From Tubulanus polymorphus (lineage: Eukaryota > Animalia > Nemertea), in assembly GCF_964204645.1 (NCBI RefSeq), contig NC_134030.1, positions 4,444,778 to 4,508,777 of the forward strand: a stretch of 64,000 nucleotides of DNA, in the 5' to 3' direction. Shown piece after piece: positions 5,595 through 29,314 of the stretch. The notes beneath the pieces were generated by a model. It made no database searches, was not told the DNA's origin, and worked only from the letters and a program-made list of their open reading frames with translations. Numbering within the stretch: position 1 is the first letter of the stretch; each line of letters begins with the position of its first letter. A program made the translations under genes and the position numbers.

Positions 5595-5627
<33 letters not shown>

Positions 5628-6334
5628 TACATTTTGAAATTTGTCCCTTCTCACACCTGCTATGTAGAATAAAACATTATTACATTTTTGATGATTTAAT
5701 CAAATGAGACTTACACTTCTAAAATATATACCCGAACATGTAATACGGTAATCATAATAGTAACAGTAACTTTATTTTTTGATATCAAATTTCAACAATA
5801 TTTTACAAACAAAACTATATAAAAAGAATACAAGGATATTATTAAGTATATGATCATGGACGTATAGACTTAACTCTAGGAGTCAAAATGGAGATTGCTT
5901 GTGATCTGGACTTATGCAAGTTTGACTGTCTAAGACTGGTTATGCCTAAAATTGTACACAATTATCTGATTGATAAAAGTTGTTTTAAACTGAAATACAA
6001 TGTATAGTAATATAGTAATTTTGAAATATAAAATAGATTCATTCATTCATACACGGTGGTTGATGGAAAGAAAATCAAGAAATTTATAACAGATTACAAT
6101 GAAATATTCCTTTTTCATTTTATGTTACCGATTTCTATATTGTGTTATTGTGTTGCAGCGTTTCCGCGGTATAGTGGTCCAGCTCCACCACCGAACAGAT
6201 TTAACATGATGCCCGGTTATCGATGGGACGGCGTCAATAGATCAAACGGCTTCGAGAAATCGTTCTACGCCAAACAGGCCGAGAAAAAAGCCAATCGAGA
6301 ACAAGCGTATAAATGGTCGATTGAAGACATGTGA
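2849..6334 (+). CDS. BUD13: BUD13 homolog (RES complex pre-mRNA splicing factor), 6 exons, 486 aa
   Basis: Exons 2849-2967, 3599-3792, 4026-4663, 5146-5297, 5392-5573 and 6159-6334 (GT-AG, total 1461 nt, in frame). N-terminus [15 protein letters not shown], then [15 protein letters not shown] and RHDS-SPPR repeats; Bud13 domain [56 protein letters not shown]. Confidence 0.96.
3146..3354. mobile_element. MITE inserted into a short repeat in BUD13 intron 1
   Basis: TIRs CGGGGTAAAAGTGCATATCCGCACCTCTC ... GAGAGGTGCAGATCTGCACTTTACCCG; (CG)GCT is duplicated on both sides; an uninterrupted copy of the target is at 3543-3562. Confidence 0.75.
4064..4273 (+). repeat. Coding tandem repeat in BUD13 exon 3: 5 x 42 nt ([14 protein letters not shown])
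   Basis: AGGCATGAC unit starts at 4064, 4106, 4148, 4190 and 4232. Confidence 0.95.
4754..4885. mobile_element. PIF/Harbinger-like MITE in BUD13 intron 3
   Basis: TIR AGGCGGGCGTAGGTCGGCCTTGCGACG ... CGTCGCAAGGTCGACCTACGCCCGGCT; TTA on both sides (4751-4753, 4886-4888). Confidence 0.8.
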
Positions 6335-7761: not shown

Positions 7762-10340
7762 ATCATCTTTGTTCCCAGGCTGTGACAGCATGAGGCTAGT
7801 TTGGGTAATAATCATAGAACAATCGTTACGAAATGTTGAAGAGAATTGTAACGATTTTTCGATTGTAACGATTTTTTGAAATTGTTTCCACATCGAGATG
7901 AAAAATGATTTACGAAATTGTTATGTACCGGTACTCATTGAATTATATGCTCTTTCATTGTTAAATCCATACGTGAAAATATGCATGGTTATTCGCCATG
8001 ATTCCCGATACTCAGAACGTTGTAAACCTGGAGAGAGAATGGAGAGTCTTACAGGAAATATTTTATAGTAATGCAATAAAGTAATACAGTTTAACTCTTA
8101 AAATAAGGTAATAACCTTTACGACTAAATAAGCTTTCTCACGGCAATCCTTTGTGGAAATAGGGGAAATCCAGCTTTTAAATAAATACCTATACTCGTTG
8201 GTTCTTTCGATCCAATTGGCGTTAATGAAAACATCAGACTCGATTTCGTTGAAATATTTGAGCGCGAATGAAAATGATCAGTACTTGCACAACGGGATCT
8301 GACGAGGATGGAAATACGTCACGCAGTTTTTTGTGTAACTGCACACCGATAGGCATTTACGTTACACGAAAAACTGCTACAAAATCACTTTCACTCGATT
8401 GAACCGCGGAATTCCGACTCGCCAGACGTAGTAGAGATAAAATGATCTTAGGGGCCCCTTTTTGGCAACTTTCTAACAAATGAATCTAGCGCCCCTCCTC
8501 ATGATGGGCTAGGCGCAAAGTCACTCTATGATCCTTCACCGAAAATCTGATGATTCTGACGTCTGAACAGTTGTCAAATGTGAATGTAGACTCCAAGAAA
8601 GACGCCACGTACAAATTTGCAGCAGCTTTGATAGGCATCAAAATTCATTCAGGCAAAGAATAATCGGTTTATTCAAACTGAAATCATAAACTGATAAATC
8701 GTATCTGTTACACAGTCGACACATGTTTTGTTATTCGGATGATTTGAGTTTTCTCCCAAACTAATGGAAATATCTAATCGAAGTTAACCAGACTTTTCTT
8801 CCGTTTCACATAATCCGGTTCAGAACTAAAGTAAAATATGAAAGTATGAAGATGGGCAAAAATACAAAGCAATTTGATATATGCGTGTGTGCACGCGTGT
8901 ATGCGTGTGTATGTGCGCGCGCGTGCGAATGGGGGGGGGGGGGGGATGCTATACGGACCTTGCGTTTGAACTGAATTGCATACGCCGACAACGTCTTTCC
9001 CAAAAGGGATTTAAGATAATATAGATTTTGCATCTGATTATGAGGTGATAGATACAGTTCATTACAAGACGAGGTATAATTCTCGTAGAATCTGATAAAG
9101 CATATTTCTATAACGCACACTGTTCTCATGCCACTGTTTCATGAAATACATCATGTTGTACATGTATTTTACATGTTGTACGAATACACAATTATGTCGT
9201 AATGACGCTAATACTGGAAATCATGTATTAAGCAATATTTTGCCGTATAAATGAATCTAAACGCTTACAAAATGATATGTTTATACAAAGTCTCTTGTCG
9301 TTAGTCTTGCAAACACAATCGAAAGCAACTGTTACCAAATTTGTGATGATTACGCATGGTTACGCATACGACATTTCGCAATATGTATAAAAGAGGCACC
9401 AATCACTTCTCATCCAGCACATCAGTACTGTAGGTAGGTAGGTTATGTCGTTGGGTATGGTTATGGTAGGTTAGGTAGGCTATCTGATATATTCCTGATT
9501 TATTAAAGAAAAGAAATGCCACCAAGGAAGCTAAAGAAGCCGAAAAGGCGGAGAAGTTAGCCGAAAAAGAAGCTGAGAAAGCGGAGAGGTTAGCTCAAAA
9601 AAATGCCACCAAGGAAGCTAAAGAAGCCGAAAAGGCGGAGAAGTTAGCCGCAAAAGAAGCTGAGAAAGCAGAGAAGTTAGCTCAAAAATGCCACCAAGGC
9701 AGCAGATGAAGCCAAAAACGCGCAGAGGTTAGCTGCAAAAGAATACGAATCGCAGTAAAAGACTTTATCGTGGAATAACAAGATGATATATTGAAATACA
9801 TCAAGGAAATGAAGATGGAAGCGGATCTGATTAGCGATTCAATGTTTCAAAGATGAAATAAAATCTTAAGTCATGAATATCACAAAATTCTTATTGCTCA
9901 TGTATATAGTTTATGAGGTGGCTACTGTTCGTTCAAATGTTAAGAAAACGATCTACTGTTCTGGACAGCAGGATGAAACTTAATCGAAAATATGTTTTAA
10001 ATATCTGCAGTGTAATGGGGAAAATATTGGATTCATCCTAATACAGAATCAAAACAGGAATGGATGCATACGTAGTTAGGATATATTACGTAATCAACAT
10101 AGAATTTAAAAAATCGGTGAGTCGAAACGCAAGCAGCTGAGTAAATCTTCCAGTGTGAAGTTCCCTGGAGTTTATTCAATTGATGATAGTGAGAAGAAAT
10201 TCGTTTGTCCCAACCGAACACGGAGAAAGCGGGTCGACCATACGATCTTATTTTACATTTTAGCCAGTATGAATTGTTCATCATAAATTTGACATGTTGG
10301 TACGGATGTCTTTTTTATTCCAAATACATGAAAATGTCGC
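7762..10340 (+). repeat. Older, diverged and internally deleted copy of the array unit
   Basis: Collinear blocks: ~7762-8443 matches ~10826-11494; ~8646-8825 matches ~16391-16560; ~9035-10340 matches ~16760-18415. Visibly more substitutions and indels than between copies A and B. Confidence 0.85.
9511..9834 (+). pseudogene. Pseudogene of the secreted AKE-repeat protein (psi-1)
   Basis: Encodes NATKEAKEAEKAEKLAEKEAEKAERLAQK-type repeats and ends ...QGNEDGSGSD*. It has lost the splice acceptor, ATG and signal peptide, has a 2-nt frameshift near 9684, and has TAA in place of the Leu of MELQD. TATAAAA is retained at 9386-9392. Confidence 0.88.
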
Positions 10341-13300
10341 AAACGTACAGTGGCGCCATGACGTTGTAACGTGTGTGACTGTCGAATGTTATGTACGAAG
10401 CGCAAACGAACCAATCGACGACGGCTAGACTTGTCATGTGAAAAAGGCTCGTTTCGGACCTTTCACTTCTCAATACGAGGAACGATAGCGCGTTCCGACA
10501 ACATTCACGAACGAACGTTAAAAAAGTAAAATCATAGTACATAACAAATGTTTCTTTTCATAAAAACGTTAAACCTAAAAGAGATACACGACGATACGCC
10601 ACAGGTCAGCAACTTTGGCGCGCCAAAACGAACTTTTAGAGAAATTTCGACGTTTTTCGAAAAAACGAACTTTCAGAGAAAATTGGACGTTTTTTTCGTT
10701 TTGGCGTTCTGGCGTTCTGGCGCCCTCATTTACATACCAGGAATTTTACGCTATGGCCCTTATCAGCCACCATAGACATCTCCTGTACCTCGCTAAGAAA
10801 ACGCTTTTACATATTTATTACTATAATCATCTTCGTTCCCAGGCTGTGACAGCATGAGGCTAGTTTGGGTAATAATCATAGAACAATCGTTGCAAAATGA
10901 GAACATTTACAAGAGAACATTTCGAATGTAACGTTTTTTATTTAAATCAGGTTAAATGATAGATGCTCGATAAAATTGTTATATATATACATTGAATCAT
11001 ATGACATTTTATTGTTAAATCGCTACGTGGAAATATGCATGATAATTCGCCATGATTCTTGATACGCTGAACTTGTTAAACCTGGAGAGAGGATGGAAAG
11101 TCCTGCAGAAAATTGTGACGGATTTTATAGTAATGCAATAAAGTAATAAAATTTAACTCTTAATAAGGTTTACGACTAAAATAAGCTTTCTCACGGCAAT
11201 CCTTTGTGGAAATAGGGGAAATCCAGTTGTCAAATATATATCTGTACTCGTTGGTTTTTTCGACCCAATTGGCGGTAATGACATCAGACCCGATTTCGTT
11301 AAAATATTTGAGCGCGAATGAAAATGATCAGTACTTGCACAACGGGATCAGACGAGGATGGAAATACGTCACGCAGTTTTTTTGTGTAACTGCACACCGA
11401 TAGGCATTTACGTTACACGAAAAACTGCTACAAAATCACTTTCACTCGATTGAACCGCGGAATTCCGATTCGCCGCACGTAGTAGAGATAAAATGCGATA
11501 AAAACTTAGCCGAAACACGCTCGAGATTGTTTGCTTGTTTGTTTTTGATGTATCGGAGAACGGTCGCCTGAACGTCTTGCGGCGGCGGCGGCTTAGCACT
11601 CAAAGCTGCGATAAAACCAACCTCGTAAAACTGATCATTTTTCACGGACGTAGTAAAAATACTCACCACTCGATACTATACGCTCGTTCTATTTTCCCAC
11701 TTTTGCACGTAGTAAAATTCAAGCATGCACGATCACGGTTTTGTACCGATAACGGATCGGTCTGAATGAAGCGCGAATATCTTATCGTTTACGTTTTGTA
11801 AACAGATCGAAACTTTAAAACGTGAATATTCTACTGTGGAGAATGTCTATATCATCTACAAAATCGATACCGCCGGAAGAGATTAATCTATAGATTAAAA
11901 ATATGGGTTTTAATTTTCGACATAAATATGTTTTTTTTTTGTTTTGTTTTTTTGTTAACATGGCGTATTTGGAGCATTGGATTGCAGGACAAACGACCTT
12001 GACACAGTGAGATGGCAGACCGCTGAAAATGAATAGTTTACTGGCCTTAAAAATCCTCTAGCTAGAACAGATTTCAAAGCAAAATTGCATTGAAAATGAA
12101 AAATAAAATCGTGTCTCGATATAATCGAATTGAATAAAATATTGCCAACTCCGACGACGCACCATAGGCGTTCTATGTGGTGTGTTGACTTCTTTCGAAA
12201 GGCAATCACTCAAAACATTAGTTGACAACTCATAATCGAACAATGCGACATTGAACGCGAATCCGCCGCGAAACGGGCAAATTGGCTGCTAGCTCTTGGG
12301 AATCACAGTCAGGCGACGATTAAATTTGAATATAGATGAAGCGCTGGAAACAGAATTTTCCTCGCTATATATCGCCAATAATTCATTCGCGCGGTCTCCC
12401 GGGGGGAGGGGGGAGAGGGAGCATGTCCAATGGGGGTTAATTCAACACGTTGTTTCTTATTTGATTTATTCCTTTTTTCGAGTCGCTGTAAAAATTCGAA
12501 AAACAACGGACGAACAAATTTTGGCAAGTTTTCACGTACCCTATCCCCCTCTTAGATCTGACCCTGATAGATCGTCATTCGTGCAGGCCTTCGTCTATGT
12601 AGGCTTAACTTTTGTTTGAGAGGCTGTGAGCCTTTTAAGTTCGTGTGTAGATCAGACATTTGTGTACCTCATCGAGACACCGGATCGACTACCGCTACAC
12701 TGGAGGAAATTATATCATGCATCCTCGGCGACATTTCATAAAAACCCGATCGGCATATCGTTTCTATGGCTCCTATAATTCCCGGTTAGCAGGATTTGAT
12801 AAGAATTCCATTCCCGCGAGGAAATGAACCCTGTTTATTAAACAAAAACGCGCGCCGACGCTGGTTAAAGGCTCCGGAAACTGGCGGCATCTCTGTGCTA
12901 GTGATTTCTTTGCTTGGTTTCATCGAACGACCCAAATCATTTCCCGTGCAATATTCAAATGAATCCATATTCAGCTGATATTTCGCCGGCTCCGTTAAAT
13001 ATCTCTATGAGAGCAATCATTTCATAATAAAGCTTAGCTTATGTATGAGCTTTTAAAGTGTTAATTTCAACTTTAGAAACAATGATGATTTTACACAAAG
13101 CGCACATCCAATGCGTTATGCAAAATTCAAATGCATTCCTAGGAAGAAATAGTTTGAATTGCGGAATGATAATAGAATGTGTTTGTAAACTGTTGTATTG
13201 ACATCGCAGAAAAAGTTCAAAACACTTCGTACAATTACATAAATAACTAATGGAAAATGGTTTCAGTTTTTTTTGCAAGATTTCAGGCTTACCACTATAA

Positions 13301-16300
13301 GGTTAGCACATATCGTTGAGTGGACGTACGTGTTATTGTGGTGATGTCAATGAAAAAGTGTTTCAGCAACACACAGTAATATGATTACATCGTTAGTGTC
13401 GCAGTCGAGATGCAATTCGTTGATAAACTAATTACTTTAAGACATCGCGACGTCAAATTTGTGGGAATTCGTTACGAACGCGGAAAATGAACTGTCCGTC
13501 GCTGGCGGAAATGACAGTAATAACGACAACGTCTATAGTCGGTTCCGTAAGAATGGTGCTGCGTCCGAGCGAGTTGGATGACCTGCAAGAAGATGCTTGG
13601 CACGTTGGTATACGCTGTTCAGCTGTTGAGAAGATAGATGCAGGATATCGAAGACGAACTAAAAGTTGTTAATCAAATGGAACCGCGTACTCCATGAAAT
13701 CGTTCCTGTCGTTTTTATTTTGTATTGGGTTTTAATGATTTTCGCGCGAAGTCGTGCGATTGAAATTTTTTGAACTTTCGAGCAGAGATTTTATGCCGCG
13801 CATGGAACATACAGAGGAAGGACGCGTTTGTTACTAACGAGCGCTATATGGTTAGCAGTGATTACCGGCTTGATGAGCTTATAATGAGATATACGATTTT
13901 GTGTCCATCAAACTAGATTGAGGATATTGTTTGTTCTGTAACAACAACGGTGCCGTCGATATCTATCATTGCGTGTAGATACGTAGTCGGGCTCATGCGT
14001 GGCAGGTTTTTTTCTACGTTTTTATGCGACGGTGTTTCATCGATATGTCCTAAGTTAATAACTCGGCAAGGCTTATCGAAATAGTGACAGCAGCCACTCC
14101 AAAATATGGATGTTTCATCCATTTGAAGATAGCTGGGCGGATTATCGTCCAGAATGTCACGTATGGTCGTGTCAGCGCATATATAAGTCAACGTTTGCTC
14201 ATTTCATTAAATAGTCGTTTTAGAAATCGTTGCTGATGATTGAATGGTGGTGGCTAGTCTATATTTGGAATTGTGGGTATACAGACAGCCTGAATAAACA
14301 TCGACAAGATGACAGACGTATACGTTCCTACAAGATAAGAGTTAATTGAGGCCGGATTAAAAAATATAGACTTCTGTATTGCCCTTTCGTCCACGCATTG
14401 CATGCGTTGATGATTAGGCAGGTGGTAAATGAACGCCTTTTATTTTGAGCTTCGCAAAATCTACTTTAAATTTCTTTTTCAGTTAAACCTGTATGCCGAG
14501 ACTTCTGAGAAAATCCGTCTGGCGATAGAAACTACTTCATATATTTGAAATTGTCTATATGATCTATAACGTGCGAATGATTGATCGTCTATATAACACG
14601 CTTGACTTTGTATAATCTGGAATGGATGTTTTTAATTTCTTTCGATTAATATATTTATCCCCCAGGATATGTTTGGAAATTGCCTTGACGGTAGATTTAT
14701 GGATAATACAGCATTGAATACCTCGACACTTAATCGTAGCGTTGTACTGACTTGCTCGAGTATCCCATCAGGACTCGCGTTGTCAGGAACAAATGATTCG
14801 TTAAAATGAATGCTGGGCAACTACCGGGGCCATTGAGCGCAGTTCTACGGAGAAAGCAAATATCGAAATAACTTTATTGGCTGCTTACTTAAGTATAAAA
14901 CAGTTCAAAGTCATTGTCGCAACTGGAAACTCATCTGTTCATTCATAGCGGTGCAATTAGTTCGATAAAACCTGCAACAACAGCTGGTGATGACTTTAAT
15001 TTCAATACTCTCCTGTTCAACGCCATAACCACTATCCCCGCGATAATCATCAATGAAAAACCTATGTTCCAGTATCCATGACCCGTCTTGGTATTCTATA
15101 AATGACGTGGAACGGGATTCTTGCGCGTAATTCGCTGTCGGCGATTGTCGGCGGTTGTCGGTTGTTGTCGGCGATTGTCGACGGGGCTAAATGAGTAGAT
15201 ATACCGTTCGTAATGAACTGGGGGGGGGGGGGGGGAATTTATTGTATAGGATATTAAAACCCCTCAAAGGGAAATTCCAGTCGAGCGGTATCGACGCAAT
15301 AATACATCTATTACCGTCGACAATTTACTGTTGCGTCTCATTTTTTGTTGTTTCTGGTTGAATTACGTTGCTAGAAAACGAAGGCTCGAGACGAACGAAC
15401 GAACGTCGTGTAATCCAAACTCCATTCGTTGATCGGATTCATTTGATGATAAATGCATATATTGTATCACCATTCTTACCCTTGTAGCCAGGAATATGAG
15501 TGTTTAGCGAAGCTAGCTATAGACTAAATATCGACGTGGCAATTCGTTGATTAACCCGGTGCTGCTCGCTCGCTCGTGAACTAACTTGACAATTCCTATT
15601 TGTGCAGACGAGAAAATCGCATCGTCTCAATTCCAGCACAGCCGCCGAAGATGGCAAGACGACGCACAATTCCCATTAGCGAATTAAAACAGGACAGCGC
15701 GCAAGCAGTTTAACGAATTATACGAAGCCCATAAAACTCACAAGATGGGGAGTTTATGTTCTTTTTTACCAGTAAGCCTCGTCTGGTTATGGTGAAGACG
15801 AAGTGATAAGGTACAACGTAATTCTGTGATCCGCAACAACGGATGAGATGTGCATATTTTATTAATTGACTCGCTAATGGCTTACTGAGTAGCCTCGGAG
15901 GAAAACCAAATACGTTGACGGGAAGCCCATAATTATCTCTCTGTCTACTTAGCTGCACAAAATCAGGTGTTTCTCTTTTGTACTATGCGCTATACGACGC
16001 CGTATACTGAGCGGAATCGAGTATTTGTCCCTAGAAAGGAATCAGTAACTATACCCCACCGATCAATTATTATCCTATTTTTTTCCAATGGTTGATTCGA
16101 ATTCCAGCAATTTGTGACAAATTGCGGGTAACGATTACACATTCAATCAAAAAAGGCAATCAAAATAAAGCAATGTTGATTACAGCAGATATATCGCAAC
16201 GTTCTAAGTATTCAGCCCATTGTGTCCCAGGCTGGGGTGGAGTTCGGTGGCAGTGACCTACCCCCTAAAATGCCCTTCAAAAAGTCAAGTACCTGAGATC

Positions 16301-17127
16301 TGCCCTTAGGAAAGTGCCCCAAGTCACTGTAAAAAAGTGAGTGCAACCTTTTTCTTGAAATAGTACTGCCACTGAAATATAACTGCAAAATTCAGGCAAA
16401 GAATAATCGGTTTATTCGAGCTGAAATCATAAACTATCGTATCTGTTACACAGTCGACACATGTAATGTTATTCGGATGATTTGAGTTTTCCAAACTAAT
16501 GGAAATATCTAATCGAAGTTAACCAGACTTTTCTTCCGTTTCACATAATCCGGTTCAGAGCAAAATTAAAGGACGAAGAAAAATGATTAAAGATGATCTA
16601 CTGTAATATTTATTACACTAAGGCCAGCAGTGTGGGGAATACGTGGATGGGTCCGTCATTAACATGGTTGGAGCTGAATGGGATCCCGGCACAAATTTGA
16701 ACATTTGATGCTCACGAGCGATTCCCATTCATCGACGGTTTTAATAAACAAATGAATTTGATGTGTAAATAGTTGTTGATAGATAAAGTTCATTACGAGA
16801 CGAGGTATATAAAGCACATTTTTATAACGCACACTGTGCACATGCCACTGTTTCTTGAAATGCATCGTGTATTTTACATGTTGTACGAATACACAATTAT
16901 GTTGTTATGACGCTAACACTGGAAATCATGTATTAAGCAATATTTGGCTGTATAAATGAAAATAAACGCTTACAAAATGATATGTTTATACAAATCCTGT
17001 ATATGTATAAGTCTGTACGGTACAAACTAAGATAAGTCAGTCTTGCAAACATTATCAAGTACAACTGTTACCAAATTTGTGATGATTATCTACGCATGGT
17101 TACCCATACAATATGTGAAAGTTTCGC

Positions 17128-17333
17128 TATAAAAGAAGCCCCACACAAGCAGATATTACATTCACTTCTAATCCGACGCATCAGTTAGGTAAGTTATGTC
17201 AATTTTATATATCTTAGATTTATTAAAGAAAATTTTTGACAATCGCTGTGGTGATCGAGGAAATCTATCGAGTAGAGAATGTCCAATGTTGGATTTAAGC
17301 TTTTTTGTATTCTTGTTTTACTTCTCCATATAG
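17128..17333 (+). promoter_or_regulatory. TATA box, short non-coding exon 1 and 5'UTR intron of AKE-repeat gene copy A
   Basis: TATAAAA at 17128-17134; Inr-like TTCACTT ~30 nt downstream (17161); donor AG|GTAAGT at 17189; polypyrimidine tract plus TAG acceptor ending 17333; ATG at 17370. Confidence 0.75.
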
Positions 17334-17369
17334 ATACGATTAATTCTCTAGCAGTGCTGCAAATCTAAA

Positions 17370-17855
17370 ATGAATTGCTTCAAAATCTTGACCGTTATTT
17401 GTGTCGTTTTGTTGATCGTCAATGAAAAAAATGCCGATGCCCAGGTAGATAAGAAAGCGGCAAAGTTAGCTGCAAAAGAAGCAAAAGAAATCGAAAAGTT
17501 AGAAAAGTTAGCCGCGAAAGAAGCCGCTAAGGCAGCTAAAGCAGCCGAAAAGGCCGAGAAGTTAGCCGCAAAAGAAGCCGAAAAGGCCGAGAAGTTAGCC
17601 GCAAAAGAAGCCGAAAAGGCGGCGAAGATAGCAGCAAAAGAAGCTGCCAAGGCAGCTAAAGAAGCTGAAAAGCTGAATAAGTTAGCTGAAAAGGAAGCCG
17701 CACGGCAGGCGAAAGAAGAGGTTAAAAACATAAAAATAGCTTTTAAAGATACTGGAAAGAACATACAAAGTAAGGTCAATGACGCAATTATGGAATTGCA
17801 AGATAATATACTTAATATAAATCAAGGAATTGAAGATGGGAGCGGATCTGATTAG
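17370..17855 (+). CDS. Secreted Ala/Lys/Glu-rich helical-repeat protein, copy A (161 aa), function unknown
   Basis: Single coding exon; signal-peptide-like MNCFKILTVICVVLLIVNEKNADA|Q; KLAAKEAEKAE-type repeats; Ile-rich tail ending EDGSGSD; upstream TATA and 5'UTR intron; paralogues nearby. Confidence 0.88.
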   Translation: MNCFKILTVICVVLLIVNEKNADAQVDKKAAKLAAKEAKEIEKLEKLAAKEAAKAAKAAEKAEKLAAKEAEKAEKLAAKEAEKAAKIAAKEAAKAAKEAEKLNKLAEKEAARQAKEEVKNIKIAFKDTGKNIQSKVNDAIMELQDNILNINQGIEDGSGSD

Positions 17856-20800
17856 CGATTCAATGTGTCCAAGATGAGATAAAGTATAAAGTTATAAAAA
17901 TCACAAAATTCTTATCGTTCATATAGTTTGTGAGGTGGCTCCTGTTTGTTAAAACGATACCCTGTTTTGGACAGCGGGATGTGGGAAACTGAATCGAAAA
18001 TACGTTTTGAATATCCAGTGTATGGCGGTTTTGCAATTCTTTGCAATAGGGGAAACATTGGATTTATCCTAATAAATAATTAAAACAGGTACAAAATAGA
18101 TGCATAGTTAGGACATGTTCATAGAATTAATAAATCGGCAAGTCGAAACGCAAGCAGCTGTTTAAATCTCCCAGTGTGAAGTGTGTTGCAGCTGCGCCAG
18201 TCACTTATTTGTACTGCCTGTCATTCTCAACTCGTTCCCTGGAGTTTATTCAATCGATGATAGAAGGAAATTCGTTTGTCCCAACTGAACACGGAGAAAG
18301 CGGGTCGAATATACGATCTATTTTACATTTTAGCCAGCATAAATTGTTCATCATAAATTTGACAGGTTGGTACGAATGTGTCTCTTCTATTCCAAATACA
18401 TGTATGTAAATGTCAGACGATGGTTAGGGCGATCATGAGATCTAGGGGGGGGGGGGTTATAAAGAAATATAATTATAGGCGTAGGCCAATATATTGTATA
18501 AGATATAAACTTACTTTTTGAGGCCAAAAAGATACCACAAGCTGCCGATGAAAGTTCCAACGCGTACTCCCATCCCAGATGACTGTCAAATTGCAGTGCA
18601 AACGTGGACACAAACTGTTGTTAGATGGTACAGTGAGAAAGGAGAGCACATGTTCAACAGAAAAGGAATCAATAACTGTCTTAACATCTCTAAAAAAAGA
18701 ATAAAATACGCTATACATTTAGTTGGGTGGGAAGATAACCTTTTTATATAAAAACTACGTGTTTGAAACTCGGATTGAAACTTTGGAGTAGCCCATCGGT
18801 CTCGATTGTTCACAACGATATACGTACATAACAAATGTTTCTTTTCATAAAAACGTTAAACCTAAAAGAGATACACGACGATACGCCACAGGTCAGCAAC
18901 TTTGGCGCGCCAAAACGAACTTTTAGAGAAATTTCGACGTTTTTCGAAAAAACGAACTTCGTTTTGGCGTTCTGGCGTTCTGGCGCCCTCATTTACATAT
19001 CAGGAATTTTACGCTATGGCCCTTATCAGCCACCATAGACATCTCCTGTACCTCGCTAAGAAAACGCTTTTACATATTTATTACTATAATCATCTTCGTT
19101 CCCAGGCTGTGACAGCATGAGGCTAGTTTGGGTAATAATCATAGAACAATCGTTGCAAAATGAGAACATTTACAAGAGAACATTTCGAATGTAACGTTTT
19201 TTATTTAAATCAGGTTAAATGATAGATGCTCGATAAAATTGTTATATATATACATTGAATCATATGACATTTTATTGTTAAATCGATACGTGGAAATATG
19301 CAAAAATAAAAAAATTTCCCCTGGAAATAGGGGAAATCCAGCTGTCAAATATATACCTGTACTCGTTGGTTTTTTCGACCCAATTGGCGGTAATGACATC
19401 AGACCCGATTTCGTTAAAATATTTGAGCGCGAATGAAAATGATCAGTACTTGCACAACGGGATCTGACGAGGATGGAAATACGTCACGCAGTTTTTTGTG
19501 TAACTGCACACCGATAGGCATTTACGTTACACGAAAAACTGCTACAAAATCACTTTCACTCGATTGAACCGCGGAATTCCGATTCGCCGCACGTAGTAGA
19601 GATAAAATGCGATAAAAACTTAGCCGAAACACGCTCGAGATTGTTTGCTTGTTTGTTTTTGATGTATCGGAGAACGGTCGCCTGAACGTCTTGCGGCGGC
19701 GGCGGCTTAGCACTCAAAGCTGCGATAAAACCAACCTCGTAAAACTGATCATTTTTCACGGACGTAGTAAAAATACTCACCACTCGATACTATACGCTCG
19801 TTCTATTTTCCCACTTTTGCACGTAGTAAAATTCAAGCATGCACGATCACGGTTTTGTACCGATAACGGATCGGTCTGAATGAAGCGCGAATATCTTATC
19901 GTTTACGTTTTGTAAACAGATCGAAACTTTAAAACGTGAATATTCTACTGTGGAGAATGTCTATATCATCTACAAAATCGATACCGCCGGAAGAGATTAA
20001 TCTATAGATTAAAAATATGGGTTTTAATTTTCGACATAAATATGTTTTTTGTTTGTTTTGTTTTTTTGTTAACATGGCGTATTTGGAGCATTGGATTGCA
20101 GGACAAACGACCTTGACACAGTGAGGTGGCAGACCGCTGAAAATGAATAGTTTACTGGCCTTAAGAATCCTCTAGCTAGAACAGATTTCAAAGCAAAATT
20201 CAATTGCATTGAAAATGAAAAATAAAATCGTGTCTCGATATAATCGAATTGAATAAAATATTGCCAACTCCGACGACGCACCATAGGCGTTCTATGTGGT
20301 GTGTTGACTTCTTTCGAAAGGCAATCACTCAAAACATTAGTTGACAACTCATAATCGAACAATGCGACATTGAACGCGAATCCGCCGCGAAACGGGCAAA
20401 TTGGCTGCTAGCTCTTGGGAATCACAGTCAGGCGACGATTAAATTTGAATATAGATGAAGCGCTGGAAACAGAATTTTCCTCGCTATATATCGCCAATAA
20501 TTCATTCGCGCGGTCTCCCGGGGGGAGGGGGGAGAGGGAGCATGTCCAATGGGGGTTAATTCAACACGTTGTTTCTTATTTGATTTATCCCTTTTTTTCG
20601 AGTCGCTGTAAAAATTCGAAAAACAACGGACGAACAAATTTTGGCAAGTTTTCACGTACCCTATCCCCCTCTTAGATCTGACCTTGATAGATCGTCATTC
20701 GTGCAGGCCTTCGTCTATGTAGGCTTAACTTTTGTTTGAGAGGCTGTGAGCCTTTTAAGTTCGTGTGTAGATCAGACATTTGTGTACCTCATCGAGACAC

Positions 20801-23800
20801 CGGATCGACTACCGCTACACTGGAGGAAATTATATCATGCATCCTCGGCGACATTTCATAAAAACCCGATCGGTATATCGTTTCTATGGCTCCTATAATT
20901 CCCGGTTAGCAGGATTTGATAAGAATTCCATTCCCGCGAGGAAATGAACCCTGTTTATTAAACAAAAACGCGCGCCGACGCTGGTTAAAGGCTCCGGAAA
21001 CTGGCGGCATCTCTGTGCTAGTGATTTCTTTGCTTGGTTTCATCGAACGACCCAAATCATTTCCCGTGCAATATTCAAATGAATCCATATTCAGCTGATA
21101 TTTCGCCGGCTCCGTTAAATATCTATATGAGAGCAATCATTTCATAATAAAGCTTATGTATGAGCTTTTAAAGTGTTAACTTCAACTTTAAAAACAATGA
21201 TGATTTTACACAAAGCGCACATCCCATGCGTTATGCAAAATTCAAATGCATTCCTAGGAAGAAATAGTTTGAATTGCGGAATGATAATAGAATGTGTTTG
21301 TAAACTGTTGTATTGACATCGCAGAAAAAGTTCAAAACACTTCGTACAATTAAATAAATAACTAATGGAAAATAGTTTCAGTTTTTTTGCAAGATTTCAG
21401 GCTAACCACTATAAGGTTAGCACATATCGTTGAGTGGACGTACGTGTTATTGTGGTGATGTCAATGAAAAAGTGTTTCAGCAACACACAGTAATATGATT
21501 ACATCGTTAGTGTCGCAGTCGAGATGCAATTCGTTGATAAACTAATTACTTTAAGACATCGCGACGTCAAATTTGTGGGAATTCGTTACGAACGCGGAAA
21601 ATGAACTGTCCGTCGCTGGCGGAAATGACAGTAATAACGACAACGTCTATAGTCGGTTCCGTAAGAATGGTGCTGCGTCCGAGCGAGTTGGATGACCTGC
21701 AAGAAGATGCTTGGCACGTTGGTATACGCTGTTCAGCTGTTGAGAAGATAGATGCAGGATATCGAAGACGAACTAAAAGTTGTTAATCAAATGGAACCGC
21801 GTACTCCATGAAATCGTTCCTGTCGTTTTTATTTTGTATTGGGTTTTAATGATTTTCGCGCGAAGTCGTGCGATTGAAATTTTTTGAACTTTCGAGCGGA
21901 GATTTTATGCCGCGCATGGAACATACAGAGGAAGGACGCGTTTGTTACTAACGAGCGCTATATGGTTAGCAGTGATTACCGGCTTGATGAGCTTATAATG
22001 AGATATACGATTTTGTGTCCATCAAACTAGATTGAGGATATTGTTTGTTCTGTAACAACAACGGTACCGTCGATATCTATCATTGCGTGTAGATACGTAG
22101 TCGGGCTCATGCGTGGCAGGTTTTTTTCTACGTTTTTATGCGACGGTGTTTCATCGATATGTCCTAAGTTAATAACTCGGCAAGGCTTATCGAAATAGTG
22201 ACAGCAGCCACTCCAAAATATGGATGTTTCATCCATTTGAAGATAGCTGGGCGGATTATCGTCCAGAATGTCACGTATGGTCGTGTCAGCGCATATATAA
22301 GTCAACGTTTGCTCATTTCATTAAATAGTCGTTTTAGAAATCGTTGCTGATGATTGAATGGTGGTGGCTAGTCTATATTTGGAATTGTGGGTATACAGAC
22401 AGCCTGAATAAACATCGACAAGATGACAGACGTATACGTTCCTACAAGATAAGAGTTAATTGAGGCCGGATTAAAAAATATAGACTTCTGTATAGCCCTT
22501 TCGTCCACGCATTGCATGCGTTGATGATTAGGCAGGTGGTAAATGAACGCCTTTTATTTTGAGCTTCGCAAAATCTACTTTAAATTTCTTTTTCAGTTAA
22601 ACCTGTATGCCGAGACTTCTGAGAAAATCCTTCTGGCGATAGAAACTACTTCATATATTTGAAATTGTCTATATGATCTATAACGTGCGAATGATTGATC
22701 GTCTATATAACACGCTTGACTTTGTATAATCTGGAATGGATGTTTTTAATTTCTTTCGATTAATATATTTATCCCCGAGGATATGTTTGGAAATTGCCTT
22801 GACGGTAGATTTATGGATAATACAGCATTGAATACCTCGACACTTAATCGTAGCGTTGTACAGACTTGCTCGAGTATCCCATCAGGACTCGCGTTGTCAG
22901 GGACAAATGATTCGTTAAAATGAATGCTGGGCAACTACCGGGGCCATTGAGCGCAGTTCTACGGAGAAAGCAAATATCGAAATAACTTTATTGGCTGCTT
23001 ACTTAAGTATAAAACAGTTCAAAGTCATTGTCGCAACTGGAAACTCATCTGTTCATTCATAGCGGTGCAATTAGTTCGATAAAACCTGCAACAACAGCTG
23101 GTGATGACTTTAATTTCAATACTCTCCTGTTCAACGCCATAACCACTATCCCCGCGATAATCATCAATGAAAAACCTATGTTCCAGTATCCATGACCCGT
23201 CTTGGTATTCTATAAATGACGTGGAACGGGATTCTTGCGCGTAATTCGCTGTCGGCGATTGTCGGCGGTTGTCGGTTGTTGTCGGCGATTGTCGACGGGG
23301 CTAAATGAGTAGATATACCGTTCGTAATGAACTGGGGGGGGGGGGATTTATTGTATAGGATATTAAAACCCCTCAAAGGGAAATTCCAGTCGAGCGGTAT
23401 CGACGCAATAATACATCTATTACCGTCGACAATTTACTGTTGCGTCTCATTTTTTGTTGTTTCTGGTTGAATTACGTTGCTAGAAAACGAAGGCTCGAGA
23501 CGAACGAACGAACGTCGTGGTGTAATCCAAACTCCATTCGTTGATCGGATTCATTTGATGATAAATGCATATATTGTATCACCATTCTTACCCTTGTAGC
23601 CAGGAATATGAGTGTTTAGCGAGGCCTATAGACAAAATATCGACGTGGCAATTCGTTGATTAACCCGGTGCTGCTCGCTCGCTCGTGAACTAACTTGACA
23701 ATTCCTATTTGTGCAGACGAGAAAATCGCATCGTCTCAATTCCAGCACAGCCGCCGAAGATGGCAAGACGACGCACAATTCCCATTAGCGAATTAAAACA

Positions 23801-25230
23801 GGACAGCGCGCAAGCAGTTTAACGAATTATACGAAGCCCATAAAACTCACAAGATGGGGAGTTTATGTTCTTTTTTACCAGTAAGCCTCGTCTGGTTATG
23901 GTGAAGACGAAGTGATAAGGTACAACGTAATTCTGTGATCCGCAACAACGGATGAGATGTGCATATTTTATTAATTGACTCGCTAATGGCTTACTGAGTA
24001 GCCTCGGAGGAAAACCAAATACGTTGACGGGAAGCCCATAATTATCTCTCTGTCTACTTAGCTGCACAAAATCAGGTGTTTCTCTTTTGTACTATGCGCT
24101 ATACGACGCCGTATACTGAGCGGAATCGAGTATTTGTCCCTAGAAAGGAATCAGTAACTATACCCCACCGATCAATTATTATCCTATTTTTTTCCAATGG
24201 TTGATTCGAATTCCAGCAATTTGTGACAAATTGCGGGTAACGATTACACATTCAATCAAAAAAGGCAATCAAAATAAAGCAATGTTGATTACAGCAGATA
24301 TATCGCAACGTTCTAAGTATTCAGCCCATTGTGTCCCAGGCTGGGGTGGAGTTCGGTGGCAGTGACCTACCCCCTAAAATGCCCTTCAAAAAGTCAAGTA
24401 CCTGAGATCTGCCCTTAGGAAAGTGCCCCTAGTCACTGTAAAAAAGTGAGTGCAACCTTTTTCTTGAAATAGTACTGCCACTGAAATATAACTGCAAAAT
24501 TCAGGCAAAGAATAATCGGTTTATTCGAGCTGAAATCATAAACTGATGTTACACAGTCGACACATGTAATGTTATTCGGATGATTTGAGTTTTCCAAACT
24601 AATGGAAATATCTAATCGAAGTTAACCAGACTTTTCTTCCGTTTCACATAATCCGGTTCAGAGCGAAATTAAAGGACGAAGAAAAATGATTAAAGATGAT
24701 CTACTGTAATATTTATTACACTAAGGCCAGCAGTGTGGGGAATACGTGGATGGGTCCGTCATTAACATGGTTGGAGCTGAATGGGATCCCGGCACAAATT
24801 TGAACATTTGATGCTCACGAGCGATTCCCATTCATCGACGGTTTTAATAAACAAATGAATTTGATGTGTAAATAGTTGTTGATAGATAAAGTTCATTACG
24901 AGACGAGGTATATAAAGCACATTTTTATAACGCACACTGTGCACATGCCACTGTTTCTTGAAATGCATCGTGTATTTTACATGTTGTACGAATACACAAT
25001 TATGTTGTTATGACGCTAACACTGGAAATCATATATTAAGCAATATTTGGCTGTATAAATGAAAATAAACGCTTACAAAATGATATGTTTATACAAATTC
25101 TGTATATGTATAAGTGTGTACGGTACAAACTAAGATAAGTCAGTCTTGCAAACATTATCAAGTACAACTGTTACCAAATTTGTGATGATTATCTACGCAT
25201 GGTTACCCATACAATATGTGAAAGTTTCGC

Positions 25231-25436
25231 TATAAAAGAAGCCCCACACAAGCAGATATTACATTCACTTCTAATCCGACGCATCAGTTAGGTAAGTTAT
25301 GTCAATTTTATATATCTTAGATTTATTAAAGAAAATTTTTGACAATCGCTGTGGTGATCGAGGAAATCTATCGAGTAGAGAATGTCCAATGTTGGATTTA
25401 AGCTTTTTTGTATTCTTGTTTTACTTCTCCATATAG
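25231..25436 (+). promoter_or_regulatory. TATA box, non-coding exon 1 and 5'UTR intron of AKE-repeat gene copy B
   Basis: TATAAAA at 25231-25237; donor GTAAGT at 25292; acceptor TAG ending 25436; same layout as copy A. Confidence 0.75.
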
Positions 25437-25472
25437 ATACGATTAATTCTCTAGCAGTGCTGCAAATCTAAA

Positions 25473-25991
25473 ATGAATTGCTTCAAAATCTTGACCGTTA
25501 TTTGTGTCGTTTTGTTGATCGTCAATGAAAAAAATGCCGATGCCCAGGTAGATAAGAAAGCGGCAAAGTTAGCTGCAAAAGAAGCAAAAGAAATCGAAAA
25601 GTTAGAAAAGTTAGCCGCGAAAGAAGCCGCTAAGGCAGCTAAAGCAGCCGAAAAGGCCGAGAAGTTAGCCGCAAAAGAAGCCGAAAAGGCCGAGAAGTTA
25701 GCCGCAAAAGAAGCCGAAAAGGCCGAGAAGTTAGCCGCAAAAGAAGCCGAAAAGGCGGCGAAGATAGCAGCAAAAGAAGCTGCCAAGGCAGCTAAAGAAG
25801 CTGAAAAGCTGAAAAAGTTAGCTGAAAAGGAAGCCGCACGGCAGGCGAAAGAAGAGGTTAAAAACATAAAAATAGCTTTTAAAGATACTGGAAAGAACAT
25901 ACAAAGTAAGGTCAATGACGCAATTATGGAATTGCAAGATAATATACTTAATATAAATCAAGGAATTGAAGATGGGAGCGGATCTGATTAG
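25473..25991 (+). CDS. Secreted Ala/Lys/Glu-rich helical-repeat protein, copy B (172 aa), function unknown
   Basis: As copy A plus one extra 11-aa unit (LAAKEAEKAEK) and an N-to-K change (KLNK to KLKK). Confidence 0.88.
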   Translation: MNCFKILTVICVVLLIVNEKNADAQVDKKAAKLAAKEAKEIEKLEKLAAKEAAKAAKAAEKAEKLAAKEAEKAEKLAAKEAEKAEKLAAKEAEKAAKIAAKEAAKAAKEAEKLKKLAEKEAARQAKEEVKNIKIAFKDTGKNIQSKVNDAIMELQDNILNINQGIEDGSGSD

Positions 25992-27436
25992 CGATTCAAT
26001 GTGTCCAAGATGAGATAAAGTATAAAGTTATAAAAATCACAAAATTCTTATCGTTCATATAGTTTGTGAGGTGGCTCCTGTTTGTTAAAACGATACCCTG
26101 TTTTGGACAGCGGGATGTGGGAAACTGAATCGAAAATACGTTTTGAATATCCAGTGTATGGCGGTTTTGCAATTCTTTGCAATAGGGGAAACATTGGATT
26201 TATCCTAATAAATAATTAAAACAGGTACAAAATAGATGCATAGTTAGGACATGTTCATAGAATTAAAAAATCGGCAAGTCGAAACGCAAGCAGCTGTTTA
26301 AATCTCCCAGTGTGAAGTGTGTTGCAGCTGCGCCAGTCACTTATTTGTACTGCCTGTCATTCTCAACTCGTTCCCTGGAGTTTATTCAATCGATGATAGT
26401 GAGAAGGAAATTCGTTTGTCCCAACTGAACACGGAGAAAGCGGGTCGAATATACGATCTATTTTACATTTTAGCCAGCATAAATTGTTCATCATAAATTT
26501 GACAGGTTGGTACGAATGTGTCTCTTCTATTCCAAATACATGTACGTAAATGTCAGACGATGGTTAGGGCGATCATGAGATCTAGGGGGGGGGGGGGGGT
26601 TATAAAGAAATATAATTATAGGCGTAGGCCAATATATTGTATAAGATATAAACTTACTTTTTGAGGCCAAAAAGATACCACAAGCTGCCGATGAAAGTTC
26701 CAACGCGTACTCCCATCCCAGATGACTGTCAAATTGCAGTGCAAACGTGGACACAAACTGTTGTTAGATGGTACAGTGAGAAAGGAGAGCACATGTTCAA
26801 CAGAAAAGGAATCAATAACTGTCTTAACATCTCTAAAAAAAGAATAAAATACGCTATACATTTAGTTGGGTGGGAAGATAACCTTTTTATATAAAAACTA
26901 CGTGTTTGAAACTCGGATTGAAACTTTGGAGTAGCCCATCGATCTCGATTGTTCACAACGATATTTTTATGTAAATGGAACCGCGTGGAAAAATCGTTAA
27001 AATCGAAAGCTATTGATCGTTCAACGTGCACCTGTCACGTTGAAGGCCGCGTATTGAATTTCTTTTGTATATATTTTTGCACGAACTTGAACTTGAATTT
27101 GATTTCTCCTTATAAAACAAGCTTTCATCGGACGAATACATGCAATGACATTACAGGGAAACAGTACAAACAGAAAATGATTACAACATTAGAAAAAGAA
27201 AAGAATAGAAAAACGATTACATAGGAAATGTAGTACCATGGGAACAAGGTGGCGATACAAGCCAGAGAAAAATCCGTATAAACGATGATTAAGGCGTGAA
27301 GGAAATCAAATACAAAACCGGAGATTTCAGTCTATTGCAATACATTAAGAATATAAATATATAAGTGTTTCGTAAAGAAATTATCAACGACATATTTATT
27401 CAAATTGCCATTATTTACAGACACGATCCCATCGGT

Positions 27437-27680
27437 ATGAAAATAATAAATTACTTAAAGAACATGGCCGTTGTAATCGTCGTTTTATTGATCGTCGATG
27501 GAATAAGTGCAAATGCACAATCGAAAAAGGAAGCCGCAGAAGCGGCTAAAATGGCAATGACAGCCAAAGACAAGCATAAACAACTTCATGATGCAAATTA
27601 AACCGCAAAGGCAGTTAATGATGTCGCAGGGCTAAAAAAATCGACAGGACACGGCGAAGGTGGCAAAGGAAGCCGCTCTG
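27437..27680 (+). pseudogene. Divergent, frameshifted paralogue of the secreted AKE-repeat gene (psi-2)
   Basis: Acceptor TTACAG|ACACGAT (27420) parallels TATAG|ATACGAT of A/B. MKIINYLKNMAVVIVVLLIVDGISANA|QSKKEAAEAAK aligns with the A/B signal peptide (VVLLIV, xA|Q). Stop at 27599-27601; repeat-like text continues in other frames (KTAKAVNDVAG, TAKVAKEAA). Confidence 0.7.
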
Positions 27681-29314
27681 TCCAGTAAGTTTTCGAAATA
27701 GGGCAAGTATATTTTTTCGTATGCCATGGAATCGCGAATAGCTTAGTCAGTTATACTCCCATTTTCTTTTTTAGGTATTCGAAATTAGACCGATCAATAT
27801 CAGTAATTAAGCAATATTGTTTCGATGCGTTTAAAGATAAAATAGAATATATCGAGTAATGTATTCATAATATATCACAACTTTCTTCGTCATTTATATA
27901 CTCGTGAGGTGGGCATCGTTGGTGTAAAAACCGGTCTATCGGTTCAGTGCACCGATACATGGAATGAACACAAGTTTGGAACGACGGTTTCGAGTAACGA
28001 AAATTTAAAAAGAAATTTATTCTACTTTGATAAAAGATCGAAATGGTTAATGGTCATTGTGATTGACATCACACGCACGCACGCACGAACTGCTTATTGA
28101 AAACAGGTGAGAGAGACTGCAAAAGATAAATCATCCCGGAGAAAAATAGCGATTCATCGGAGTGGATAGTCAGTTCCGCTCGATGAATCCGGATCATGCA
28201 TAACGCAACGAATGTTGGCGAGGATCTTACTGATTTGATGTTAATGTTTCGGCTAATTAGCGCTAAGTTTGATACGTTTATCAAAGCGCTTACACCGGAG
28301 GCAACCGTCCATCCATTAGTTAATATACAATCTTATATTTACTCTCGGTCATCCATCTTCACTTCAAGGGTTTCAGCTAGTGTTCATTTTCTCTTTCTCC
28401 ATGCGTATGTCCATTATTCTTCTCCACAGAGCGAGAATAGTATCCAGATATAATCGAGTGCTCTAATAAATTACAAGTTACCAGCTTATCACGATGAGTC
28501 CATTCGAACGAGCTTCAAGAGAATGAAAATAGCTTTTTTGTGTAAAAAAAAAGAAGAAAACGACGCACTATTTTCTTTTGCTATTTCCGTACGAGAATGG
28601 ATAGATACCCGCTTTACGGGGGACAACATATTTACAACTTCATCCGGCAACTGAAGATTTGATTGGCGTTTTATATCGAATAATTCTGAGGATAACGGGT
28701 TTTTAACGGTCAGGACATCCATTACTTTGCTCTGATGTCGGTTTATATCTTAAATGTTCTCTCGCAAACGCCCGTCTCGGTTTATCGTTTCTATCCTCAA
28801 ACGCAGCCAACTGATTCATTGGAACGAAAGAATGCCCGTTTATACGCATATTTACGGTCAATAATACAGCCAATAAACCCAAGCCATAAACGATACTCTT
28901 CTCTATATTGCTCCGGTAAGGCATCGATGATTGACGAGCCGGCTTACGATCATAGATTTCGTCGGACGATTTATCCACGATAACCTTGAAATACGTTTCA
29001 ACAACATTGAAGAACTGTGCGCAGACGAAGAACACGATGCGGAAACAGGTGGCGCTACTCGTTGTGAATGTGTCCTTTAATAACCTTGATATTCTGAAAA
29101 ACCCAACGGTCCAATTAGCTAAATTCATTAAGACCGGCTTAGATGTATATATATGTATCCAATAGTATATATAGTATTGTAAATAGTTGATGTATATATA
29201 TTTTGTTACGTTTTCATTCTCAAAATTTTAATCACTTCAGTGTTGTTTTGTAAATATTTGTATATACATGTGTAATAGTTTTCCTCCATAAACCATGGAA
29301 TTGGTTGAAGTGTA

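Follow-up and report, generated by a model that had tools for sequence, protein, structure and literature searches.

Group 3 late embryogenesis abundant (LEA) proteins (Pfam LEA_4, PF02987) are strongly hydrophilic and are built of tandem 11-residue Ala/Lys/Glu-rich units from which a long amphipathic helix can form. In the class A order of Dure's LEA 11-mer, lysines flank the apolar stripe while acidic or amide residues occupy the middle of the polar face. ER/K single alpha-helices and EAAAK linkers are long Ala/Glu/Lys helices standing as lone rods. In the cross-linking domains of elastin, lysines are spaced by two to three alanines on one helix face. Cardin-Weintraub glycosaminoglycan-binding motifs and designed Ala/Lys heparin-binding peptides also align basic residues along one face, with an axial spacing of ~0.5 nm. 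The coiled-coil silks of bees, ants and hornets are Ala-rich helical secreted proteins of about 30 kDa with heptad cores, encoded by tandem paralogues. Here, we describe a locus of the ribbon worm Tubulanus polymorphus, contained in a window of 64,000 nt (the whole stretch of DNA analysed, to which all coordinates refer, on the + strand unless stated otherwise). Its two intact genes, A and B, appear to belong to a lineage-restricted orphan family and are predicted to encode a secreted, lysine-striped helical protein.

The preliminary description of this stretch had listed four same-strand paralogues (psi-1, A, B and psi-2), and all of them were recovered on the + strand from the listing of open reading frames (ORFs) and by direct reading. 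Genes A and B are intact and B is distinguished by one additional 33-bp unit (11 aa) and a single substitution (N103K), while psi-1 and psi-2 are broken or truncated. The TATA and GT-AG motifs, the single coding exon and the leader ending ADA, then Q, which had been announced for the intact copies, were all found, as was a downstream AATAAA (Table 1). Transcription and the 145-nt intron of the 5' untranslated region (UTR) are predictions from these motifs. The ATG of the + frame has an A at position -3 and no other ATG precedes it in the predicted leader exon. The leader of A displays Lys5, 12 apolar residues (6-17), Ala22 (-3) and Ala24 (-1), followed by Gln25. This fits the classical signal-peptide rule (a basic n-region ahead of 7-15 apolar residues, with small ones at -3 and -1) and, by this rule only, agrees with the earlier reading of a signal-like leader. 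The composition given previously proved exact: 79 of the 92 residues from 28 to 119 of A are Ala, Lys or Glu, with a net charge of +8, and the mature chain (137 aa) is devoid of Cys, Pro, Trp and Tyr. It also lacks His, contains 36 Ala and one Thr, and carries a net charge of +4 over its 137 residues.

AlphaFold2, run on the single sequence without alignment, predicted one helix spanning residues 2-131 of the mature chain (mean pLDDT 89.7), in line with the long continuous helix proposed initially. The length of ~14 nm then attributed to the rod holds for its Ala/Lys/Glu part alone, but the whole helix would reach ~19.5 nm if continuous (130 residues at 0.15 nm per residue). Repeat identity in the rod was 0.65 at lag 11. 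The 25 Lys/Arg of residues 26-112 were concentrated on one side of the helix: at 100 degrees their angular resultant was 0.82 (best value 0.85, reached at 99.4 degrees), against 0.23 +/- 0.07 (maximum 0.53) in shuffles. Leu/Ile/Val formed a second straight ridge ~95 degrees from the lysines (resultant 0.81 at 100 degrees) and an Ala face was centred opposite to them (0.54 at 100 degrees), while Glu was dispersed around the helix (0.2). On 11/3 and 3.6 wheels, Lys occupied three adjacent central positions of the polar face. At the heptad angle of 102.9 degrees this order collapsed (resultants of 0.15 for Lys and 0.31 for Leu/Ile/Val), which places the rod outside the classical coiled coils. The C-terminus is different and displays a core with 3-4 spacing (V136, I140, L143, I147, I150 and I154).

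The rod had been rationalised beforehand by EAAAK-type i,i+4 salt bridges. This was not borne out: opposite-charge i+3/i+4 pairs were as frequent as in 5,000 composition-matched shuffles (20 versus 20.2 +/- 3.6), whereas like-charge pairs were in excess (28 versus 20.2 +/- 3.6) because the lysines stack in one stripe. The resemblance to ER/K helices and EAAAK linkers, with which A shares a long Ala/Glu/Lys helix predicted as a lone rod, thus does not extend to their charge pairing. The structural reading was corrected to that of a lysine-striped straight helix, as modelled here, instead of a salt-bridged rod.

Most of the analogies offered in the preliminary description could be confronted with these data. 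An extracellular protectant of the group 3 LEA type, in which a hydrophilic 11-mer helix would shield surfaces or stabilise the secretion during emersion, drying or freezing, agrees with the 11-residue periodicity (0.65) and the hydrophilic Ala/Lys/Glu-rich composition of A. It was nonetheless judged very unlikely: no LEA_4 match appeared even at E up to 1, the order of the stripe is inverted with respect to the LEA pattern (lysines hold the middle of the polar face and not the borders next to the apolar stripe), and the family is confined to a single locus without expansion. A further differs from LEA proteins by its signal-like leader and its non-repeat zipper tail. Type I antifreeze proteins display Thr, or another ice-binding residue, every 11 positions of an Ala-rich helix; this analogy was abandoned in view of the single Thr of the mature chain.

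The suggestion of a membrane-active secretion fared no better. A cationic helix acting on membranes or microbes in mucus would be consistent with a protein predicted to be secreted, cationic and helical, and helical Lys-rich cytolysins occur in ribbon worm mucus. On the Eisenberg plot, however, none of 120 18-residue windows and only one of 127 11-residue windows lay above the surface-seeking line. The apolar face consists of alanine, all 137 residues together carry a net charge of just +4, and known nemertean cytolysins are Cys-bridged whereas A has no Cys. We regard this role as the least probable of those considered. Exchangeable apolipoproteins and lytic helices are set apart from A by the same absence of 18-residue surface-seeking windows, and no Pfam apolipoprotein match was obtained.

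A self-assembling, silk-like fibre was also weighed. Here, the Ala face and the Leu/Ile ridge would pack rods into straight bundles nucleated by the zipper, and the protein would be the material itself rather than a cross-linker of another polymer. The straightness of both faces (resultants of 0.54 and 0.81 at 100 degrees) and the 3-4 spacing of V136-I154 speak for such packing, as does the precedent of hymenopteran silks, which are Ala-rich helical bundles made from tandem paralogues. On the other hand, the rod has no heptad periodicity (0.15 for Lys and 0.31 for Leu/Ile/Val at 102.9 degrees), large apolar residues occur only once per ~9 positions, and the protein is short (137 aa). Its periodicity is 3.6 and not 3.5 residues, its size half that of the bee, ant and hornet silks, and no silk homology emerged from the database searches; the dimer prediction gave no verdict (score 0.00). 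The coiled-coil silk analogy therefore fails for the rod, and a fibre of this kind was considered improbable.

Two designs remained close in geometry. As in the Ala/Lys domains of elastin, also a secreted protein, A places successive lysines 3-4 positions from each other along the same side of an Ala-rich helix; its motif, however, spans 87 residues and includes many Glu, Gly/Val/Pro-rich hydrophobic domains are absent, and no homology was found. As in Cardin-Weintraub motifs and designed heparin-binding peptides, basic residues lie on one face at an axial spacing of ~0.5 nm. The former are brief segments of larger proteins and the latter are synthetic, whereas A would be a whole natural protein, with interspersed acidic residues, acting as a putative binder. 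Since the lysine array has the geometry of glycosaminoglycan-binding helices and of elastin lysine pairs, a secreted cross-linker or cross-linked element is proposed. After removal of the 24-residue signal peptide, A and B would be released as a single straight alpha-helix of ~130 residues. Its first 87 residues, made of 11-residue units, would set ~25 lysines in one straight stripe, with a sparse Leu/Ile ridge a quarter-turn away, the Ala face opposite and Glu scattered around; its last ~40 residues would provide a short hydrophobic zipper with 3-4 spacing and, at the end, an acidic Gly-Ser stretch. The stripe would amount to a linear polycation with lysines ~0.5 nm apart. It may bind long polyanions of the secretion, such as acidic or sulfated mucus glycans, or its same-face lysines may be offered for enzymatic cross-linking, as in elastin. 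By joining rods, the zipper would then allow multivalent cross-linking of a gel, tube or cocoon matrix.

Taken as a whole, i.e. a lineage-restricted secreted gene whose lysine-striped helix binds to, or is cross-linked within, a polyanionic secretion, this reading is put forward tentatively. The polyanion-binding or cross-linking role taken for itself is rather doubtful. A bolder version is improbable: a 'polylysine ruler' with ~25 lysines in line over 13 nm, whose zippered rods would template or cross-link sulfated glycans in mucus or tube. It would represent a matrix cross-linker without a described family, recently born in one lineage.

Several points weigh against the proposed function and, in part, against the gene itself. 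The net charge of the rod is modest (only +8) since the lysines are partly offset by ~18 Glu/Asp. In sea water (~0.5 M salt), binding by simple electrostatics loses strength. The helix was modelled from one sequence without alignment, and a two-chain prediction of self-association for the mature protein scored 0.00, which counts neither way. Given their youth, A and B represent only one independent intact lineage, while the other two lineages are broken. The in-frame 33-bp indel between them is no sign of selection, as the unit is a multiple of three. Finally, the three public runs covering the stretch behave as DNA and the sole possible RNA run (2015, same species label) contained none of it. 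This absence says little, since the name 'T. polymorphus' covers two species, one Pacific and one Atlantic (PMC8468679). No joint skipping the intron was seen in the contigs of the three DNA-like runs.

The possibility had thus to be considered that these ORFs are not functional genes but a 33-bp minisatellite, open on both strands and caught in a recent duplication, i.e. unexpressed or decaying relics. Besides the nil RNA evidence for A and B, the failure of two of the three independent lineages and the lack of a homologue anywhere in the collections searched, this possibility is favoured by antisense frames that are open as well. The latter comprise 143 codons at 17348-17779 (-) and 154 codons at 25451-25915 (-), begin with TTG only and are rich in Ala/Ser/Phe. 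They were read as the mirror expected from a GCN/AAR/GAR repeat, i.e. as by-products of codon composition and not as genes. The + frame, on the contrary, has an ATG in good context, a leader conforming to the rule, a non-repetitive C-terminus and promoter, splice and poly(A) motifs. Among the 33-bp units, the third codon position was the least conserved (0.55, against 0.79 and 0.61 for the others), and 17 of 44 same-residue positions at lag 11 used a different synonymous codon. The leader ORF survives in psi-2 at ~27% DNA divergence, and the frame of the intact copies is still open since the split from psi-1, whose own frame did not stay open. A stop would result from 5.5% of coding-sequence substitutions, and the local ratio of indels to substitutions between the A and B units is 12:36 (1:3). 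Together with the divergence of the psi-1 flanks from A (~8-23%), these rates make it unlikely that a neutral 483-nt frame would have remained open since that split. From this we infer that the ORF has been maintained by selection. In sum, A and B probably represent a genuine gene whose product is a secreted helical protein, and decaying relics are unlikely.

The family was confined to one locus in the whole 268-Mb assembly, whether searched by protein or by promoter DNA. The whole protein retrieved 41 matches from a 5.8-billion-cluster collection, all of them through the repeat alone; none aligned with leader or tail and none had a signal-like N-terminus. Among these likenesses, metagenomic virus-like proteins (P0009, P0001-P0008) display a nearly identical 11-mer unit, P0009 being 65% identical over 89 rod residues. 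The likeness ends at the repeat, leader and C-terminus of A being unmatched and the N-termini of the virus-like proteins not signal-like; it was read as convergence on a simple helical spacer.

The non-repetitive termini matched no characterised family. Region searches with the C-terminus and with the leader gave no candidates. A HMMER search of the C-terminus against 1.84 billion representatives returned a single match, P0042, a bacterial surface protein of 1,621 aa with a 33-residue tandem repeat at residues about 250-425. Over 36 residues it shares 33-36% identity with the C-terminal zipper of A, but its E-value is inflated by six repeats, and it was rejected as a homologue in favour of an analogue, probably a convergent 11-based coiled-coil stalk sequence. 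A Pfam scan with E up to 1 produced only sub-threshold CAF1A_acidic and noise, the ESM Atlas no usable match, and a sequence search of the Protein Data Bank (PDB) only a de novo designed helix (E 0.64). Foldseek found nothing in the PDB for the model, as expected for a single helix. The exact sequences of A and B were on no record, a literature search with the rod repeat strings found no papers, and nothing comparable was apparent from the titles or abstracts of nemertean mucus proteomics papers. Since the collections searched contain few nemertean proteins, 'orphan' means here that no relative exists in what was searchable. Within these bounds the searches support a lineage-restricted orphan family without detectable relatives.

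The C-terminus of A ends with Glu-Asp-Gly-Ser-Gly-Ser-Asp, which is retained in psi-1. Proteoglycan core proteins bear a glycosaminoglycan on Ser-Gly with acidic neighbours, and this C-terminal motif is a candidate site of that type.

Self-BLAST of the window uncovered three tandem units at the locus (Table 1). Between units 1 and 2 there are 36 substitutions over ~7,600 aligned positions (0.47%) and 12 indels. The copy amplification, invoked earlier for a putative high-dose gland product, comprises just two near-identical copies, A and B. Unit 0 is old and shrunken. The data support a very young duplicate pair standing beside old dead copies in a tandem array. The orphan array with birth and death of copies that had been suggested is thereby upheld, with one locus and no homologue found. 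The locus would have evolved by tandem duplication followed by decay, and gene length would change through slippage of 33-bp units. Units 1 and 2 both start with a fragment of a dispersed repeat (>200 genomic copies), a plausible substrate for unequal crossing-over. Away from the locus, a 114-bp part of this repeat forms inverted pairs 9-10 kb apart and adjoins 46-bp sub-repeats with a spacing of 144 bp; this arrangement is reminiscent of a large DNA transposon with its terminal inverted repeats.

The duplication of the A and B units is real. Contigs from three public runs, representing two samples, cover the stretch. In all three runs, contigs ending at 26964 run on into a 30-letter word whose only occurrence in the window is at 18822, so that the junction of unit 1 with unit 2 was seen; other contigs span 26964 into the unique flank and display the junction of unit 2. 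The depth of the sequence shared by the two units was about twice that of the single-copy flank in each run (76-83 versus 36.7, 51-53 versus 24.4 and 15-19 versus 8.4). An assembly artefact in the form of a falsely duplicated haplotype is ruled out by both junctions and this doubled depth, and the constant 2:1 ratio also identifies the three runs as DNA. At base 25814 the three runs display T, as in gene A, where the assembly has the base A, so that the N103K difference between A and B is seen in the assembly alone. Other differences from the assembly were a G at 27487 in all three runs, a 4-bp deletion at 27634 in one run and a 4-bp insertion at 28088 in all three.

The coding remnant of psi-1 has neither ATG nor leader, and its frame is interrupted by several stops and shifted at least twice. 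The lost sequence extends from the intron into the repeats and took the start codon and leader with it, while the final C-terminal residues and the stop codon are retained. Upstream, the TATA box, a TCACTTCT block 3' of it (a putative start block) and the splice donor are conserved. A different unit was expanded here (9510-9743; 29 residues, 87 bp, 2.7 copies), which contains an Asn-Ala-Thr sequon absent from the intact copies. As 29 = 11 + 18, this unit also holds the helical phase.

In psi-2, the leader is the best-kept part despite ~27% DNA divergence, and its DNA is homologous to the A leader (local score 52, whereas shuffles gave 24 +/- 2.5 and at most 37). The start ATG of A corresponds to ATA, and the frame opens at an ATG located three codons further upstream. 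Psi-2 is either a short gene or a pseudogene.

The array is preceded by exons of the gene for the splicing factor BUD13 of the RES complex (4004-6331, +). Pfam Bud13 matches were found at 5375-5704 (E 6e-15) and 6032-6331 (E 3e-16), downstream of an Arg/Ser/Asp-rich repeat exon (4004-4669, +). In the 36 kb following the array (28000-64000), no long open frame had a Pfam match, and this stretch is either gene-poor or contains short exons only. Rfam gave no match at gathering thresholds over the whole window.

Table 1. Coordinates of the tandem units, genes, gene remnants and associated motifs in the window.
Feature	Position	Strand	Remarks	Basis
Unit 0	7762-10534	+	old, shrunken; carries psi-1; patches 77-95% identical to units 1 and 2	self-BLAST
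psi-1 TATA box	9386-9393	+	TATAAAAG, conserved	
psi-1 coding remnant	about 9509-9834	+	29-residue (87-bp) repeats	
Unit 1	10534-18821	+	8.3 kb; carries gene A	self-BLAST
Dispersed-repeat fragment	10615-10783	.	start of unit 1; >200 genomic copies	
TATA box of A	17128-17135	+	TATAAAAG	motif
Predicted 5'UTR intron of A	17189-17333	+	145 nt, GTAAGT...ATAG; putative donor GTAAGT at 17189, putative acceptor AG at 17332-17333	motifs only
Coding exon of gene A	17370-17855	+	161 aa; coordinates include stop codon	ORF listing
Signal-like leader of A	17370-17441	+	24 residues, ends ADA, then Q	read by rule
Rod domain of A	17445-17705	+	residues 26-112	
33-bp tandem array of A	17538-17644	+	3.2 copies	
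Non-repeat C-terminus of A	17706-17852	+	3-4 spaced Val/Ile/Leu zipper V136-I154; acidic Gly-Ser-Gly-Ser-Asp end	
AATAAA downstream of A	18071-18076	+		motif
Unit 2	18820-26964	+	~8.1 kb; carries gene B	self-BLAST
Matching dispersed-repeat fragment	about 18902-19040		start of unit 2	
TATA box of B	25231-25238	+	TATAAAAG	motif
Predicted 5'UTR intron of B	25292-25436	+	putative donor GTAAGT at 25292, putative acceptor AG at 25435-25436	motifs
Coding exon of gene B	25473-25991	+	172 aa	ORF listing
33-bp tandem array of B	25641-25780	+	4.2 copies	
AATAAA downstream of B	26207-26212	+		motif
psi-2	27437-27601	+	diverged paralogue; intact leader ending ANA, then Q; 27 further codons, TAA	
Open frame past psi-2 stop	27602-27688	+	in same frame; second TAA at 27686-27688	

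Altogether, A and B are well-formed candidates for a lineage-specific secreted material protein, the functional reading of which is unproven. To our knowledge, the non-toxin proteins of ribbon-worm secretions have hardly been studied. If expressed, this protein would serve as a clear case from nature in which an arithmetic of 11, 18 and 29 residues keeps a charged stripe in register along a very long straight helix, which would be useful to protein design and biomaterials. It would also constitute a case study of the origin and turnover of a young orphan secreted protein through tandem duplication, slippage of repeats and decay, and could help to account for the material properties of ribbon-worm secretions.

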